Origin: Oikopleura dioica
Lineage: Eukaryota > Animalia > Chordata
Direction of reading: 5' to 3'
Assembly (NCBI GenBank): GCA_907165135.1
Contig: OU015569.1
Span: 6,324,001-6,388,000, forward strand
Length of the DNA: 64,000 nucleotides
Shown here: piece after piece, positions 43,372-50,972 of the stretch
How the letters are laid out: each line of letters starts with the position of its first letter
Numbering within the stretch: position 1 is the first letter of the stretch
The notes under the pieces: model-generated
The model's input: the letters and a program-made list of their open reading frames with translations, nothing else
What the model was told of the DNA's origin: nothing
The model's database searches: none
Program-made: the position numbers and the translations under genes

Positions 43372-45875
43372 CTTGAGTAGAATGATGACTGCTTCTCCGC
43401 AATCTAAATGATTTCGTTATTTTCCGGCGGCGGCGATTGCGAGAACTTTTAAATAGACGAGTTAGCCTTTAGCGCCAGCAATAAACCCACTAACTGTTCA
43501 AGTCCGCCCATGTTCTTGACAGTTAGCAGCTCTAAATATGAGTGCCTTTTTAATTATCGCGAGCCTCCTGTTATTTTAACAGAGGGTTTGCAATAATCTG
43601 TTTTTGCATCAACGAAATTTACATTCTTGAAATAGCCTCTCAAATGTTTTGAGCACGCCAGTGCCTGTTTCAAATGGCAGCCTGTAACTGTATATCATAC
43701 CTCGGTTAGACAAAATTGTTTGTTATCTGCGCTGTTTTCTAGTTTTTTTTTCTTGGCTGGTATAAGCGGTGTTGGGGATTTATTATTTCTCTCGAAAATA
43801 CTTTCTCGGAATGTGCGCCGCACGTGAAATAACTGCGACAGCACTTAAGTTCTCTCCCGCCGTGGTGTTGGTGCAGCACAGTATCGCCAATCACGCTGAA
43901 CACGTGATAAGTCAGGGAAGGTTAGTTGAGATTTAAAAGTTATTCCGAAACGACGCCTTTGGAATAAGCTTGTTCGTGGTTGACAAAAACCCTCCTCCGC
44001 CTGGGATGGAGCCTCAGGCCACTTCTCAGAAGAATATTCCTCGGTAATTCCCCACCTCTTTCTATTATTTCTTTATCATCCCGCCCGTGCTTGTTTCCCC
44101 AACATGCGGGAGTCAAGTCCTACCCTCTGGCTCACCAGAATCAGCTTATTTCTAGCGCCGGATTCTTTCTCAGCAGAATAAGTAGCACGTTCAGTCGGAT
44201 GTACTTTAGTTTACTAGAACTAATCGCCAGAACGTGCGCTAGAATCGACTTACGCAAGGATAATATTCAACTGAATTTATGAGATTTATCAATTGTTCGA
44301 ACATGGAAAGGCAGACTTCAAATGTACAAAAATTAGAATACTTAGTCTTTCTACTCTGATGATAGCGAATTCTCTGTTAGAGCAAGACTCTTACCTGCAA
44401 TTTTTAGTTTGATGTTATTTTTCTTTTCCAGCTCTTATGATAAAAATATGACGAAAAAATAAAAACTGAAGTTTAGGTGTGTGTCTGTGAGCTGGTCTCA
44501 CTATATTATGAAATTTCGATGGTGGTGCTGCTGGTGGCGCAAAACACTTATCGCTTAGTAATCTTAACGTGTTGAGCCTTTCAAGCTTTCTCGCCGAGAG
44601 ATGAAATGATGATTCTTGATGCTCAAGGGAACGTCGGTTCCGTTCTGGTAATGTCTAGTATGAGCCAGATTCGTCACGTTAGATATCAAAGCCTTGATAA
44701 TGAAGAATGCGCCCTCGGGCACTGGGCTCCGATTAGGTCGACCTGGAAGAATCCACTGCACTCTTTTTGCGCGAAATAGTCCGAAGCACAGAAGAGTACT
44801 TCCCGCTGTGTTTTGCAAGCACGCATCACGGGATCAGGCGATGGAACGTGCTGGAAATGTTTTTGCTCCAGGTGGTGGCGCAATACAATCAGCGTTGCGG
44901 AATGTGACCACACAGACGTCTGCGAGAATCGTTTTTAGCCTATTTTAAATAATAATATCATCTTTCACAAGTCTTTTTTCTTCTAATCTAAGAACCATGT
45001 ACAATTGTAAGAGCATTCTCCAGCTTGTCTAGCGTTGACGGGGAAAAGAATCTGACTGTCAGAAGAAAGCTCGCCGGAATCTAGACTCTCGTTTGGGAGT
45101 GACAGACTTGTAATTCCCTCGGATCCACCAGATCAGTAAGCGGATTATCTCCAAGTTTCTGCAATATTAGTCAAAAAACTATATTTAGGCTATGAAATCC
45201 TCAATAATAGGTACGTTAATCAAACTAACAAGAGTCCATCGGAGCAGCATTAGTTCAACAGAAGCACCGATGTGACAAGAAGTCAATCTATTCGTCGTTA
45301 TGAAGAGATGCAAAGGTTGTCATTTTGTCGAAATTTTGGCCGCGTGACGAAGAAAATTTAGACAGTTTTTGCAATTCAACTTTGACCTAGTAATGAAACG
45401 TCGACGGACTTGAGTATCAATAAAATAGTTTTGTCCGTCGTCGATTCCTGTGTCTGCGGATAATCCGTCCTCGCAGAACCGTCTGTGGAAGCTTTGTCTT
45501 GATATCCTAATTGCCTATAAGATTCTCTTTTCCGCTTCGAAGTACTTGGGTTGCACTTTCCTTGTGGTATTTTAGGGTCTGAATGAGACCATTAAATTAG
45601 GCTGACGGATGATTTGGCGAGAGTTTCTTGTCAGAGCAGTACCGAATCTGGACCAAAGAGTACAAGAAGTATTTATTTGTTTCTGATCAACAAACTGAGA
45701 AGACACTTCATTCAAATACACCACACGACTTTTTCATAATTTCAGTATTCCTCAGAAGCAATGAAGAGTTCGCACAGGAAGGCCTGGCAGGTACCTCAAT
45801 AAACGAGAAATTAAAACAGTGAAACCCCGGATATTTTTAAACAACGCTGAGAAAATAATTTAAACATGCTTACGG

Positions 45876-48800
45876 ATGAAAATACAAGTATTTCTCGCTT
45901 TTTCATCCGTCAGAAGTTTTTCCGAGAGAATCGACACTAATTATATGATAAGGTCTTCTTTGCCGCTCTCCTTCTTATGGATGGAGTAGCTGGCCAAGTT
46001 TGGAGGCATCAACCTAGAGCTGCTCGTTCAATCCAGAAATTTGAATTTACAGAAGCCCAGAAAACCTCGCTTGCAAACGAAGTCAGCTGCCAATTTATGG
46101 GAAAGTATAACGAAGCCAGCAATGAAGTAGGGAAGGTGCCTAAAGTTGTAACGGCAAAGTTGTGTTTGATCACGTGACTAACGACACCGGGATGGTCGCT
46201 TGATTTTGAGTGACATCGCTATGAGCACCTTAAATAGCCAGAATGACCTTGTTAATGGACGCGATGGATCAGTACGACGAGCTTATGGCGTCAGAAGATG
46301 AACAGCTCGCTGCTCTACAGGATTCCTATAAAGCTTTCGAGATCTTGCACGAAGAACAAAATCAGCAGTGCCAGACAAATTTCACATCAATGCATAAATC
46401 CTGCAACACGTGCATCATGGAGAAATGCCAGGATTACTACAGAAACAACTGTGCCTCTTTGGAGCCCGACCCAATGGAAATTATTGAACCCCCGTGCAAG
46501 ACAAGGCCCGACTCGCCTTGCGAAGAGCCAGAAAGAACTGATCAAAGCATCGGAAGTAATATTGATAGATTTCCTCCTCGGCCTACCCCTGTTCAGGTAT
46601 CTTTCACTTGTCTTATTTATAGAGACTTAAAATTTAAAGCCTTCTTCTGGAATGAATATTCAAATTTCGGTCAATGGCGAGTCTGTTCCTTCCATGACCC
46701 AAGCATTGGAAATGATCAGAACTACAATGACTCAAAAGGTTACGGAACCGGAAGCTGACTGTGAACCAGGAAATTCTTTTGCGGAGTTTAAAGAAGTTGT
46801 CAGTCCAGTTTCGCGGAGCTCGTCTTACCAAGTTTCGATGTCCTCAAGTGGAGGAAACGGCAACACAGGCGCGGCGATGGGCTCATTGGGATCTCTTGAC
46901 GACATGATGCAAAATGAAAATGCGAAGGTGCAATTTAGAGCCAATATTAATGGAAAGGAAATCGAATGTGACTCTTACGAATGTATCCAGCAGCACAAGG
47001 AATGGTGGAAACATACAGAAATTTTGATTTCATATAATTTGTCGTAAATAATTAGAGTCAGTAGCCATGTTTAATCCAAATTGAAAGGAACAAATGTCCC
47101 GCTTTGAAAATCTATGGAATCAAAGAGCTGGTGCTTTTGGGCAGGATAGATCTGACTCTTCTGGTGCATCACGATTTTCGTATTCAATGAGTGGTAGCTC
47201 GGGATCGGGTCCTCGAACTTCATCGTCGTCCTTCCGAATGACATCATCATCCGGCGGCAGCTTTCCTCAGGCGCAGAGTCTCGGGTCCTCCATGACTGGT
47301 GGCTGCTCAGAGTGTGGAGGCTGTGGACAGCAGCAACAGGGAAGTTCTGCATTCCGCCAAAACCCCGTGGCTAACAGCGGCCCTTGCGGATTCCAGGAAC
47401 GAGCAGAGGTCGGTCATGGACGAGACTTATTTGGTGAAGTCAGACGTGATCTTGTTTCACTTGAAAACAGCGGCAATGGCAAAATTACAGGTGAAGCAAT
47501 ATTTGTTTTTGTGATGTTTGCGTCATTTACGGCCAAAGTTCGAAAAAAGGTAATCTTTTTCTTAGAGAATGGAAATACCTTTTCTTACTCTTGGGAAGGA
47601 ACTGGTGGCATTCCAGAAAACCTAGAAGAAATAATGAATCTTGGCTTAAGTCGACTAAATCGCCAGCGAGCGCACATGCGCAGCGGATGTAACACCGGTA
47701 GATGCACCAGGAATTTGCGAGAAGGACTTGCTCGTTCTCGACGATACTACCCAACAAAAACTCGACGAGCGGTTTCTCAATGCGCCATCGAACAAGCTGC
47801 CAAAGAAGCTGCCGAGCGTGCTCGCCAAGAAGAAGCTCGTCGACTAAGCGAACTCGCCAAGCAGGGTGGATACAACTCAGCATGCTCAATGCTCAACTCT
47901 CAACATGGGGAAGCACAAACGAATATGATGGTAACACAGCTTTTGACAAACCTCAAAGGAGAGCTCAGTCGCGCAACAGAAAAGTGTATGTCCAGTGGAA
48001 ACTGCCATAACACTCGAGTTAATATCAACATCGTTGGACGAACTTCTGGCGGCGGGTGCAACCCTGATGATTCCAACTCACCATGCAATCAAGCTCAGTC
48101 GCTTTACGATCAAACCCGAAACAAGATCAATGAGTGGACCAATACGCAGACAAATACACGAATCGACTTCTCCTTCAATGGCTCTGGTCAACCACAGCCT
48201 CAACCAACACAATCACCAACTCGACGACCTTATTACCCAGAAACTGATGCACCTTATGTCGCTCCTCAGCGCACGACCCCAGGTCGAAATGCTCCAGTTC
48301 AGCCAAATACCGACTCTAGCAGCGTCCCTGTTGATAATTTCCCCTCAAGACCAAATCCAGACGACTATTCGTATGATGGTTCACAGTCGTACGATGACAG
48401 CACAGTAGACTCAGATTACTATTCCAGTCTAGAAGAAAATATGAACCAGCTCGTTGAAAATCCAGCTGAGTGGGCGATTTGGGGTTCGTGGAGCTCATGC
48501 GACATCAACTGCGCAAACGGAAACGAAAAAGGAACTCAAGTTCGACGCCGAAATTGTGAAATCGACCGACAAGTAGTGTCCAATCTTCCAGTTGAAAATT
48601 GTAACATTGGAGACGATGTACAATACAGAGAGTGCCTGCCAGTACCCAAGCCATGCAATACCGTTAGTTTTTTGTAAAAATATGGTGAAACTAAGACGTT
48701 TTTAGTGGGCCCACTGGGGTTTCTGGACAGAATGCTCTGCAACTTGCGGTGCTGGTACCCGAGAGCGAACTCGCTCCTGCATGTATGGTGGCGAGTGCCA

Positions 48801-50715
48801 GGGACCGAAGACTCAACAGGAAGCTTGCACAAACCTTATTCACCCTGAGTGTCCGACTTGGTCCGATTGGAAAATCGCTGCCGAATGCTCAGTCACCTGT
48901 GGTCAAGGTGTTCGCTCATACTTTAGGACTTGCCAAAATGGACGAATCAATGAGCCCGGTTGTGTTGGACCTGCTGCTCGACAAGAACCTTGTGATACAG
49001 GTACTATTAGTTTTGTAGATCATCATTTACTACATCGTCAACGACAGATTAATGACATAACATAAAACTAGGAAGGGAGTGTGCACTCTGGACTCAGTGG
49101 TGCGAGTGGACTGGTTGCTCCGCCACATGTGGTCGAGGAGCTCAAGTAAGAGAACGTCAGTGTGTCAATGGCGAGCCTGGAGAACCTGGATGCGAGGGAC
49201 GAGCAAACGAGAGAAAGGTAACTTGGATCAGATTTCATCTCATAAAATTTAATGAAGATCTGTTATGCCGAGCAAATAGCATGTCCCGAGTGGACACCAT
49301 GGAGCGAATTTACCGCTTGCTCTGTGTCTTGTGGAGAAGGCCTGAGAACTCGAGTTCGTGATTGTCGCAACGGAAACATCGGCGACGATGGATGTATCGG
49401 AGAGCCCGAAGAAGCTGTCGAGTGCGAAGCCAGTCGTCAATGTCCCTTCTGGTCTATTTGGGGATCATTTTCTTCTTGTTCCGTCACTTGTGGAGAAGGT
49501 GAGAGGACAAGAACACGCGAATGTGTCCATGGGAGAGAAGGAGAAATTGGATGCGAGGGCACCTCCGTCGTTGTGAGCATGTGCTACGGTGCTAGACGAG
49601 AATGCGAATACTGGAGTGAATGGAGCGAGTATGGACAGTGTTCTGGTGGGCATTGAACTAGTTTTCAGTATTTTATCTATTAAGTAACTTGTGACCGTGG
49701 AACACAACAACGAACTCGTGAGTGCATCAATGGACGGCCAGGTGACGTAGGCTGCCCTGGAAGCGCCTTCGAAGCTATCCCCTGCGAAGAAGAGGCGTGC
49801 ATCCGATATGTTGATTATCCTGATGCCAATCCTGAGCCAGTAGAATGTGACGAGAATCCTGATTATGGAGGTGACCCTAAATCAAATCGGAATCGGCATT
49901 CATTTTTTATATAGATCAAGATAATCAGGAGCCACTCGAACGAATTGAAATCGAGCATCGCGAGGATGAGCCATTTGTCATGCCTGCTCCACCTGTAATT
50001 ACTTTCCTTTGCATACGTCATGCTAAACTGGTTTTAGCCAACCAAGGAACCCACCCCAGCCCAAGATATCACTTGCGGTGGAATTCTCGAACGCGACTCC
50101 CAGCAATGCTCCTCTCTTTTCCAAGAGAGTTGCGCAGCCTGTGACTCTTCCCTAAGCTCTGTCTGCTCCGAGTATTATAGCCTCAAAGTCAAATTGGAAG
50201 AGCTTCATCACGAGATGAAACAATGTGAAGCTCGCAAGAAGTTCTACGCTGAGCGAAAAGCTGAACTTAACATTCAATACATGGAACTCCAACAGGTAAA
50301 AACTCCGCGATTACAGAAAGCGTTAAAAATGTAAACCAGAATGTAAACGAAAACCACCAATGGGCGTTGAATATGGCTGTCAGTCTTCTCCCCGCTGACG
50401 CTACATCTCCAGCGGAATACCCACCTTGCGATATCAAATCTGGTAAGAGAAGTTTATGAGACTATTTATCATTTAAAATTTTCAGCAACCGTACAACCCG
50501 AGCCTAGCCAATTCGGCTTCACGATCTCCGTTGTTGCGAAAATGAACGTAACCCCCTATTCCGAAATTCGGATCGACATGGACTTCAACCAACCTTTCTC
50601 CAACTGCTGCAGCAGCAGACAAACAATGGCACGAACTCGACGATCTCTTGGAAATCGGCTTATTCTTAAATTGAGGCAGATTTCTGAGCGAAATACGCCC
50701 ATGTCTTACCCCTAG
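45876..50715 (+). CDS. Secreted clusterin-like protein with an inserted Ser/Gly-rich region and seven thrombospondin type-1 repeats
   Basis: Signal peptide MKIQVFFAALLLMDGVAG, coiled coil, Cys cluster CQTNFTSMHKSCNTCIMEKCQDYYRNNC, seven WxxWxxCSxTCGxG repeats (~48460-49800), second Cys cluster CGGILERDSQQCSSLFQESCAACDSSLSSVC, coiled coil, NVNENHQWAL, stop at 50713-50715. Confidence 0.8.
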
Positions 50716-50972
50716 CCTTTACCAAATTTACATCCATTGAACAAAACTCATTGAAAAAAAATACGCGAGCTTTTATCGCGTGGATATCTTACTGCTTCTA
50801 TGTTCTATAATGATAATGAATAACGCGAGACAAAAAGTCTTTTTGTTCAAGATGGTTATTTATTCAATTTATTAAGCAATTGACCTTTTTCCAGTCTGGA
50901 AAATTCCAGATACTAGATAAAGAAATATTTCTCTGACAAAGAAATAGAAAAATGGCCGATCCTTATCTAGAA

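Follow-up and report, generated by a model that had tools for sequence, protein, structure and literature searches.

We found a single gene on the + strand at positions 45761-50715 of the window, that is, the whole 64,000-nucleotide stretch of the Oikopleura dioica contig OU015569.1 that was analysed. The gene has 14 exons and a coding sequence of 4113 nt (sum of the exons, in frame), which is translated into 1370 amino acids. Transcript evidence comes from X1 and X2, metatranscriptome RNA contigs of two studies with 99% similarity to the window, and from L003, a natural full-length cDNA of a sister lineage with an ORF of 1375 aa. Further relatives are P0002, a divergent orthologue fragment, and L001, a divergent larvacean-like genomic contig. 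The exons are as follows.

Exon 1, 45761..45790, + strand: start codon and signal-peptide residues 1-10 (MKSSHRKAWQ); joint 45790>45953 in X1, GT..AG; N-terminus the same in the L003 ORF.
Exon 2, 45953..46130, + strand: remaining signal peptide (to ~45994, ...DGVAG) and start of the N-terminal helix; joint in X1 and X2 (two studies).
Exon 3, 46238..46596, + strand: helix, Cys cluster 1 (46369-46452) and Pro-rich tail with an extra Cys pair; Pfam PF01093.
Exon 4, 46640..46999, + strand: block GMNIQISVNGESV... (46649-46687) and Ser/Gly-rich segment; RNA joints; block kept in P0002 and L001.
Exon 5, 47088..47490, + strand: Ser/Gly-rich low-complexity sequence with a GGCSECGGCG motif (47298-47327); continuous frame.
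Exon 6, 47566..48662, + strand: NTFSYSW block (conserved), RSRR, KTRR, helix 47769-47861 (conserved) and TSP1 repeat 1.
Exon 7, 48706..49000, + strand: TSP1 repeats 2 and 3; Pfam TSP_1 E 1.3e-17, two stretches; joints 48662>48706 and 49000>49072.
Exon 8, 49072..49217, + strand: TSP1 repeat 4; Pfam TSP_1 E 2.2e-8; RNA joints.
Exon 9, 49258..49645, + strand: TSP1 repeats 5, 6 and the start of 7; Pfam TSP_1 E 4.2e-16, two stretches; RNA joints.
Exon 10, 49685..49870, + strand: remainder of TSP1 repeat 7 (to ~49800) and acidic linker; TSP_1 18.8 bits, profile 12-49; RNA joints.
Exon 11, 49915..49994, + strand: acidic linker; RNA joints.
Exon 12, 50038..50295, + strand: Cys cluster 2 (50074-50166) and long helix (50167-50295); Pfam PF01093 E 0.003-0.008.
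Exon 13, 50340..50442, + strand: NVNENHQWAL motif (50340-50369) and linker; X2 joints.
Exon 14, 50486..50715, + strand: CC pair (in NCCSS, 50602-50616), RTRR site (50632-50643), terminal helix and stop; AF2 secondary structure of low confidence.

Exon 4 shows no significant Pfam family. Exon 6 further holds a Cys-containing helical region and a linker that is Pro/Thr-rich and acidic Tyr-rich.

The metatranscriptome RNA contigs back 12 of the 13 splice junctions. The start codon is the ATG at 45761, and the signal peptide, MKSSHRKAWQ followed by VFFAALLLMDGVAG, is split over exons 1 and 2 and conserved in L003. A preliminary description of this DNA had placed the start at the ATG at 45876, with MKIQVFLAFSSV as signal peptide; both lie inside intron 1 (45791-45952), which is removed in the RNA contigs. 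The stop codon occupies 50713-50715, and the X2 contig covering 49347-50836 terminates in a poly(A) run, the poly(A) tail beginning near 50836. The junction 47490/47566 of the intron 47491-47565 is absent from all RNA contigs of this lineage, and the residues that read-through of this intron would add are missing in L003 and P0002; the 3′ boundary of exon 5 would accordingly be at 47490. Two introns, 46131-46237 (GG..AG) and 47000-47087 (GA..AG), are non-canonical.

Both clusterin-like halves described below lie within the single 1375-aa ORF of L003. An ORF of the same length is also present in two further SRA assemblies, and it is a member of a 27-sequence cluster. Transcripts had been proposed as the means of deciding whether the two halves are separate genes, and the RNA contigs, L003 and the two further assemblies all speak for a single gene. 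The two-gene reading is rejected, as one transcript carries both halves. No paralogues were found in this genome, and the gene is single-copy. The raw reads of two 'organism A' runs belong to an L003-like lineage; they map to exon 11 only, with 90-95% identity, and run from it into spliced flanks matching L003, so that these reads, from one exon and another lineage, yield no expression level.

We then investigated the N-terminal half. Its ~140 residues comprise a helix and a five-Cys cluster, C-x10-C-x2-C-x4-C-x7-C, located at 46369-46452 as first described. The human spacings given for comparison in the preliminary description agree with the clusterin chain in 7ZET, which shows C-x10-C-x2-C-x4-C-x7-C and C-x9-C-x6-C-x2-C-x7-C. 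Exon 3 matches Pfam Clusterin (PF01093) with 19.1 bits (E 7.5e-4, profile 43-102). The gathering cut-off of this family is 23.6 bits, which none of the window exons attains, and the whole L003 protein is also below it (9.9 bits, E 0.44), its N part aligning to profile 18-102. On the other hand, P0001 and P0002, both fragments of divergent orthologues, exceed the cut-off with 26.5 and 25.8 bits. A profile built from three sequences (A1) has human clusterin, 7ZET, as its sole match in the PDB (E 1.1e-3, threshold E up to 10), with all five Cys in register at 7ZET chain residues 79-106. In the Atlas search, the best three matches of exon 3 are Clusterin. In single-sequence searches, phmmer with exon 3 against 1.84 billion representatives matched, up to an E of 0.001, just two larvacean-like fragments and no clusterin of vertebrates, and phmmer with exon 3 or exon 12 against the PDB found no clusterin. 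A six-frame search of the whole genome with Pfam Clusterin returned nothing, not even this locus, and is therefore uninformative. The homology of the N-terminal half to clusterin is solid, because orthologues pass the Pfam cut-off and the A1 profile matches 7ZET only.

In the C-terminal ~190 residues, a five-Cys cluster is followed by a long helix, a Trp-ending motif and a tail. Cluster 2, C-x10-C-x7-C-x2-C-x7-C, was correctly placed at 50074-50166. The coiled coil noted behind it appears as a long predicted helix, and the NVNENHQWAL motif follows at 50340-50369. The spacing of x10, x7, x2, x7, compared with x9, x6, x2, x7 in human, is identical in L001, which carries SINSEFEWVNTV in the place of NVNENHQWAL, at the same distance of 51 residues past the last Cys. 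Exon 12 matches Pfam Clusterin at profile 268-316 with a sub-threshold 15.7-17.0 bits, in the window copy only; its E of 0.003-0.008 refers to the whole Pfam library and corresponds to ~1e-7 per family. Each cluster thus matches Clusterin independently, at collinear and correct positions (43-102 and 271-316), below the cut-off. The C-terminal copies of L003, P0003 and L001 did not match Pfam Clusterin, clusterin was not found in the PDB with the C-terminal profiles A3 and A4, and the Atlas search gave no usable match for exon 12. Protein homologue searches with exon 12, the L003 C-terminal region and profile A3 returned close fragments only, and no full-length named protein. The AF2 model of the C-terminal 200 aa is poor (pLDDT 52.7); behind the one long helix predicted across exon 12 it has only two short strands and then a helix at the terminus, so that an alpha/beta-roll domain is not borne out. 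Judging from the Cys pattern, the one sub-threshold match and a weak co-fold (below), the C-terminal half is probably homologous to clusterin.

Between the Cys clusters lie ~1,050 residues of Ser/Gly low-complexity sequence, conserved helical Cys-containing blocks, a dibasic site and seven TSP1 repeats. The furin-type sites RSRR (47733-47744) and KTRR (47757-47768) are kept in L003, and P0002 has RTKR before VVSQCAIEQAA; cleavage by furin at RSRR/KTRR is predicted from these motifs. Inspection by eye of the surroundings of the dibasic site shows no evident hydrophobic tails of clusterin type. The count of seven TSP1 repeats (48471-49800) was borne out: six are strong on Pfam TSP_1 (PF00090), and seven were counted in L003 (151.8 bits, seven stretches). 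The window exons score 34.6-64.2 bits, above the gathering cut-off, and have the WxxW and six-Cys pattern, while repeat 1 (48471-48662) is divergent and sub-threshold (13.2 bits). Glycosylation motifs of the WxxW and CxxS/TCG types occur, and the best solved match of the array is properdin (E 9e-22, L003 residues 808-1104). A Ser/Gly-rich segment and seven TSP1 repeats do separate the clusters, as had been described; the insertion proposed there is one of two possibilities, as the ~1,050-residue middle may have been either gained in larvaceans or lost in vertebrates.

The whole architecture is conserved in a divergent relative. L001 is collinear over the full length; it has seven TSRs, and the spacing within both clusters is identical. 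The spacing of cluster 2 is retained at an overall identity of only ~22-31%. The long MAFFT alignments A2, A5 and A7, in which exon fragments were misplaced, were left out.

We then investigated the pairing of the two clusters. The products of exons 3 and 12 co-fold with an ipSAE of 0.60, against 0.00 for the best control (the partner pLDDT was 70 or more, and the runs shared at least 74% of their contacts); the verdict was 'weak support', with no contacts given. Of the pairing anticipated in the preliminary description, the association of the halves is thus favoured over the controls, and the support is weak. Together with the profile matches of both clusters and the single transcript, this means that none of the three refuting outcomes named in that description was obtained. 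In the mechanism that we propose, the clusters would pair in the ER through five antiparallel disulfides and the flanking helices would pack together, stapling the chain ends as in clusterin. A furin-like protease could then cut at RSRR/KTRR, leaving two disulfide-linked chains. Judging from the domains, the TSR array may bind matrix, glycans or cell surfaces, and the clusterin-type module may serve as a clasp and possibly bind clients.

The domain layout of clusterin, its cleavage by furin and its five antiparallel disulfides are known from PMC12527946, which describes it as a protein of vertebrates. Vertebrate clusterin (CLU or apolipoprotein J; PF01093; 7ZET) and its paralogue CLUL1 are secreted like the larvacean protein. 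Shared features are an N-terminal helix followed by C-x10-C-x2-C-x4-C-x7-C, with residue similarity at W, K-Q-x-C and F-Y-A; a second five-Cys cluster with mirrored spacing, behind which come a long helix and the motif N-E-x-x-x-W; between the clusters, a site of furin type; and a C-terminal tail of similar length. However, the inter-cluster gap is ~155 residues in human and ~1,050 in the larvacean protein, which alone has seven TSP1 repeats and low-complexity segments. Two loops of its C-cluster are each one residue longer, it is without evident hydrophobic tails, its whole-protein Pfam score is under the cut-off and its host is not a vertebrate. Properdin (complement factor P) has a similar contiguous TSP1 rod but consists of TSRs only, forms head-to-tail oligomers via terminal TSRs and lacks clusterin-type ends, a coiled coil and a low-complexity region. 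Thrombospondin-1, SCO-spondin, ADAMTSL and the oikosin oik23 are likewise secreted, with tandem TSP1 repeats and a presumed matrix or adhesive role; none of these TSR matrix proteins is known to have clusterin-type Cys clusters. Oik23 combines 2 TSP repeats with 2 CCP domains (PMC3390340). The role in the larvacean house suggested earlier finds no support, as the paper on the house proteome gives TSP repeats, in its main text, only for oik23 (PMC3390340).

Taking all its parts jointly, we regard as probable the explanation that this locus is one protein-coding gene for a secreted multidomain glycoprotein whose two ends are of clusterin type. Alternatively, only the N-terminal module might derive from clusterin, with the C-terminal cluster and helix being an unrelated or convergent TSR-matrix module and the ends not paired as in clusterin. 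The orthologue copies that do not match Clusterin, the failure of A3 and A4 to find 7ZET, the blank Atlas result for exon 12 and the weak co-fold would all fit such an origin, which we nevertheless consider unlikely: cluster 2 has exactly five Cys in a clusterin-like mirrored spacing, the x2 loop standing at the pairing position, and this spacing is identical in L001 despite the low overall identity. In addition, the window copy falls at the correct Clusterin profile positions with a low per-family E, and the co-fold controls are at zero. That the resemblance as a whole arose by chance, the protein being simply a novel TSR protein with Cys-rich and coiled-coil segments, is very improbable. All window scores are indeed under the Pfam cut-off, and a composition of coiled coil and Cys can push scores up, but two orthologues score above the curated cut-off, A1 finds clusterin alone in the PDB even at E up to 10, both halves match independently and collinearly, and the best Atlas matches are Clusterin.

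The clusters could also pair between molecules, producing disulfide-linked head-to-tail dimers, rings or polymers of TSR rods and hence a fibre-forming matrix protein. Across a gap of this length, the kinetic benefit of pairing within one molecule would be expected to be smaller than across clusterin's much shorter gap, TSR-rich secreted proteins often build fibres, and the co-fold is blind to pairing in cis or in trans. There is, however, no direct evidence for pairing in trans, the bonds of clusterin form within the precursor (PMC12527946) and the house-proteome paper describes no such protein in its main text (PMC3390340), so that we give this arrangement a small chance, somewhat below that of a clusterin-derived N-terminus alone. 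If true, extracellular fibres would here be built in a way not known before, and this would hint at an origin of vertebrate clusterin from a matrix protein whose middle was lost.

We found no description in the literature of clusterin ends combined with seven TSP1 repeats, and nothing relevant on clusterin in Oikopleura or tunicates; the main text of an O. dioica single-cell preprint mentions no such protein. Clusterin, an extracellular chaperone, is of medical importance, and the finding under our preferred explanation bears on its origin. The clasp, made of a disulfide domain and a coiled coil, would tolerate, or would once have contained, a loop of roughly 1,000 residues. Its combination in cis with a properdin-like TSR rod is intriguing with regard to complement; the complement targets of clusterin, C7, C8 and C9, themselves have TSP1 domains. 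The larvacean protein may be a natural experiment in which the clasp role is separable from the hydrophobic tails.

The preliminary observation holds in all but the start codon. We found that the clusterin-like ends around a long middle region with seven TSP1 repeats (TSRs) are real, are encoded by one mRNA, and are kept in a distant relative. The start had been placed at ATG 45876, which falls within intron 1; the actual start is at 45761, from which the signal peptide reads MKSSHRKAWQ followed by VFFAALLLMDGVAG. Positions 45700-50900 hold eukaryotic coding sequence broken by very short introns, and the gene (45761-50715, + strand) has 14 exons totaling 4113 nt, or 1370 codons and a stop. To locate the splice junctions, we aligned to the window metatranscriptome contigs from two marine studies, X1 and X2; they are mostly 99% alike to it.

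Splice junctions of the clusterin-like gene.
45790>45953, + strand, junction in metatranscriptome contigs
46130>46238, + strand, GG..AG junction in contigs of both studies
46596>46640, + strand, junction in metatranscriptome contigs
46999>47088, + strand, GA..AG junction in metatranscriptome contigs
48662>48706, + strand, junction in metatranscriptome contigs
49000>49072, + strand, junction in metatranscriptome contigs
49217>49258, + strand, junction in metatranscriptome contigs
49645>49685, + strand, junction in metatranscriptome contigs
49870>49915, + strand, junction in metatranscriptome contigs
49994>50038, + strand, junction in metatranscriptome contigs
50295>50340, + strand, junction in metatranscriptome contigs
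50442>50486, + strand, junction in metatranscriptome contigs

No X1 or X2 contig spans 47490>47566, where read-through keeps the frame; we took it as an intron because the read-through residues are missing from both orthologues. Two introns have non-canonical donors, 46131-46237 (GG..AG) and 47000-47087 (GA..AG), the first of which was confirmed by two independent studies. Introns of 39-162 nt and such GG..AG and GA..AG borders are consistent with a larvacean from the Oikopleura dioica complex. The metatranscriptome contigs carry a poly(A) run after 50836, and one X2 contig links TSP1 repeat 5 with the poly(A) tail. In the 3' UTR (50716-50836), both metatranscriptome contigs share several SNPs and one extra A after 50753 relative to the window, reflecting either population variation or an assembly homopolymer error.

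A natural cDNA from a sister lineage (L003) served as the full-length proxy for the window protein. This JGI metatranscriptome contig (4261 nt; DNA identity to the window about 75%) has a single ORF of 1375 aa with all parts in the same order as in the window gene, ending in ...NTPMSYP. The two halves, proposed to belong to one gene, thus lie within one ORF. Two more SRA assemblies contain an equally long ORF, and none of the 27 members of its 90% cluster has an informative name. Raw reads from the 'organism A' runs, which bear the same species label, are 90-95% identical to the window only in exon 49915-49994. Their spliced flanks match L003, indicating that the label spans deeply divergent lineages. 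A transcript-level contig of the sister lineage (L009:4982-6283) runs past the clusterin-like gene into a same-strand CYHR1/TRAF-type gene, which may reflect polycistronic (operon) transcription or the joining of two sequences in assembly; the downstream neighbours in the window differ from those on L009.

We then compared the two ends with clusterin. The exon 3 product, containing the N-terminal five-Cys cluster, matches Pfam Clusterin with an E-value of 7.5e-4 (19.1 bits, profile 43-102), and with the N-terminal part of L003 the match widens to profile 18-102. Two divergent orthologue fragments, P0001 (26.5 bits) and P0002 (25.8 bits), exceed the curated cut-off of 23.6. A three-sequence N-terminal profile found human clusterin (7ZET) as its sole PDB match at E up to 10 (E 1.1e-3), with five of five Cys, a Trp and an F-Y-A segment in register. 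In the Atlas, Clusterin accounts for each of the three nearest clusters (score 0.80), which we regard only as a lead. These Pfam and PDB matches bear out the N-terminal resemblance noticed earlier, and we take the homology of this half to clusterin as established.

The C-terminal clusterin half proposed in the preliminary description stands in part. The exon 12 product matches the alpha-chain cluster of Pfam Clusterin (profile 268-316) with a library-wide E-value of 0.003-0.008, and its Cys spacing mirrors the N-terminal cluster, being x10, x7, x2, x7 as against x9, x6, x2, x7 in the 7ZET chain. Its x2 loop lies at the position needed for antiparallel pairing with that of the N-terminal cluster. 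By eye, Ile at +3 after Cys 1, [ML] at +3 after Cys 2 and [LM] at +4 after Cys 4 also agree with clusterin. A helix of about 50 residues follows, and then an N-E-x-x-x-W motif that has a counterpart in human clusterin. However, Pfam Clusterin did not match the C-terminal copies of L003, L001 (a divergent genomic contig) or P0003 (another orthologue), two C-terminal profiles did not find 7ZET in the PDB, and an Atlas search with this half returned nothing. AF2 modeled the C-terminal 200 aa poorly (pLDDT 52.7); the only elements of this low-confidence model are a long helix spanning both the cluster and the coiled coil, a pair of short strands and a last helix at the end. When exon 3 (residues 1-82) and exon 12 were co-folded, the ipSAE was 0.56-0.61, compared to 0.00 for three controls, with a partner pLDDT of at least 70 and at least 74% of contacts shared between runs; this weakly supports the suggested pairing between clusters.

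In the middle region, exons 4 to 6 fit no Pfam family. Blocks kept in both lineages include ...VNG..V..M..ALE..., NTFSYSW, and a dibasic site with VSQCAIEQAA and then a helix behind it. This site is RSRR...KTRR before AVSQC in the window (47733-47768) and L003, and RTKR before VVSQC in P0002, in agreement with the furin consensus R-x-K/R-R. It sits between the two clusters, as does the cleavage site of clusterin (PMC12527946). A second site, R-T-R-R (50632-50643), lies 24 residues from the C-terminus; it is kept in L003, degenerate in L001 (D-T-R-R), and may be a C-terminal trimming site. The TSR array has WxxW and CxxS/TCG motifs, scores 151.8 bits over seven stretches in L003, and has properdin as its closest solved structure.

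L001 (11 kb, from an ENA metagenome) carries P0002 and is collinear with L003 end to end. It keeps the same N cluster behind a signal peptide, as well as the conserved blocks of the middle region, seven TSRs and the C cluster. The two are 31% identical over the N-terminal and middle parts; in the TSR array the figure is about 47%, and the C-terminal parts match at E 6e-13. The L001 C cluster is split by an intron, and its spacing is still C-x10-C-x7-C-x2-C-x7-C as in the window; SINSEFEW follows 51 residues past the last Cys, the same distance as the window motif.

Searches of the 64.3 Mb assembly (19 contigs) with N- and C-terminal profiles (A1 and A3) found this locus only. Our literature search found no paper tying clusterin to Oikopleura or tunicates, and the house-proteome paper, in its main text, mentions TSP repeats for oik23 alone. 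Because Pfam's formal whole-protein test did not assign the protein to Clusterin, and because homology of the C-terminal half, although probable, is not proven, we filed it as a clusterin-like protein, not a clusterin. We infer that the protein would form a disulfide clasp and be cleaved, and that it may have an adhesive or chaperone function.
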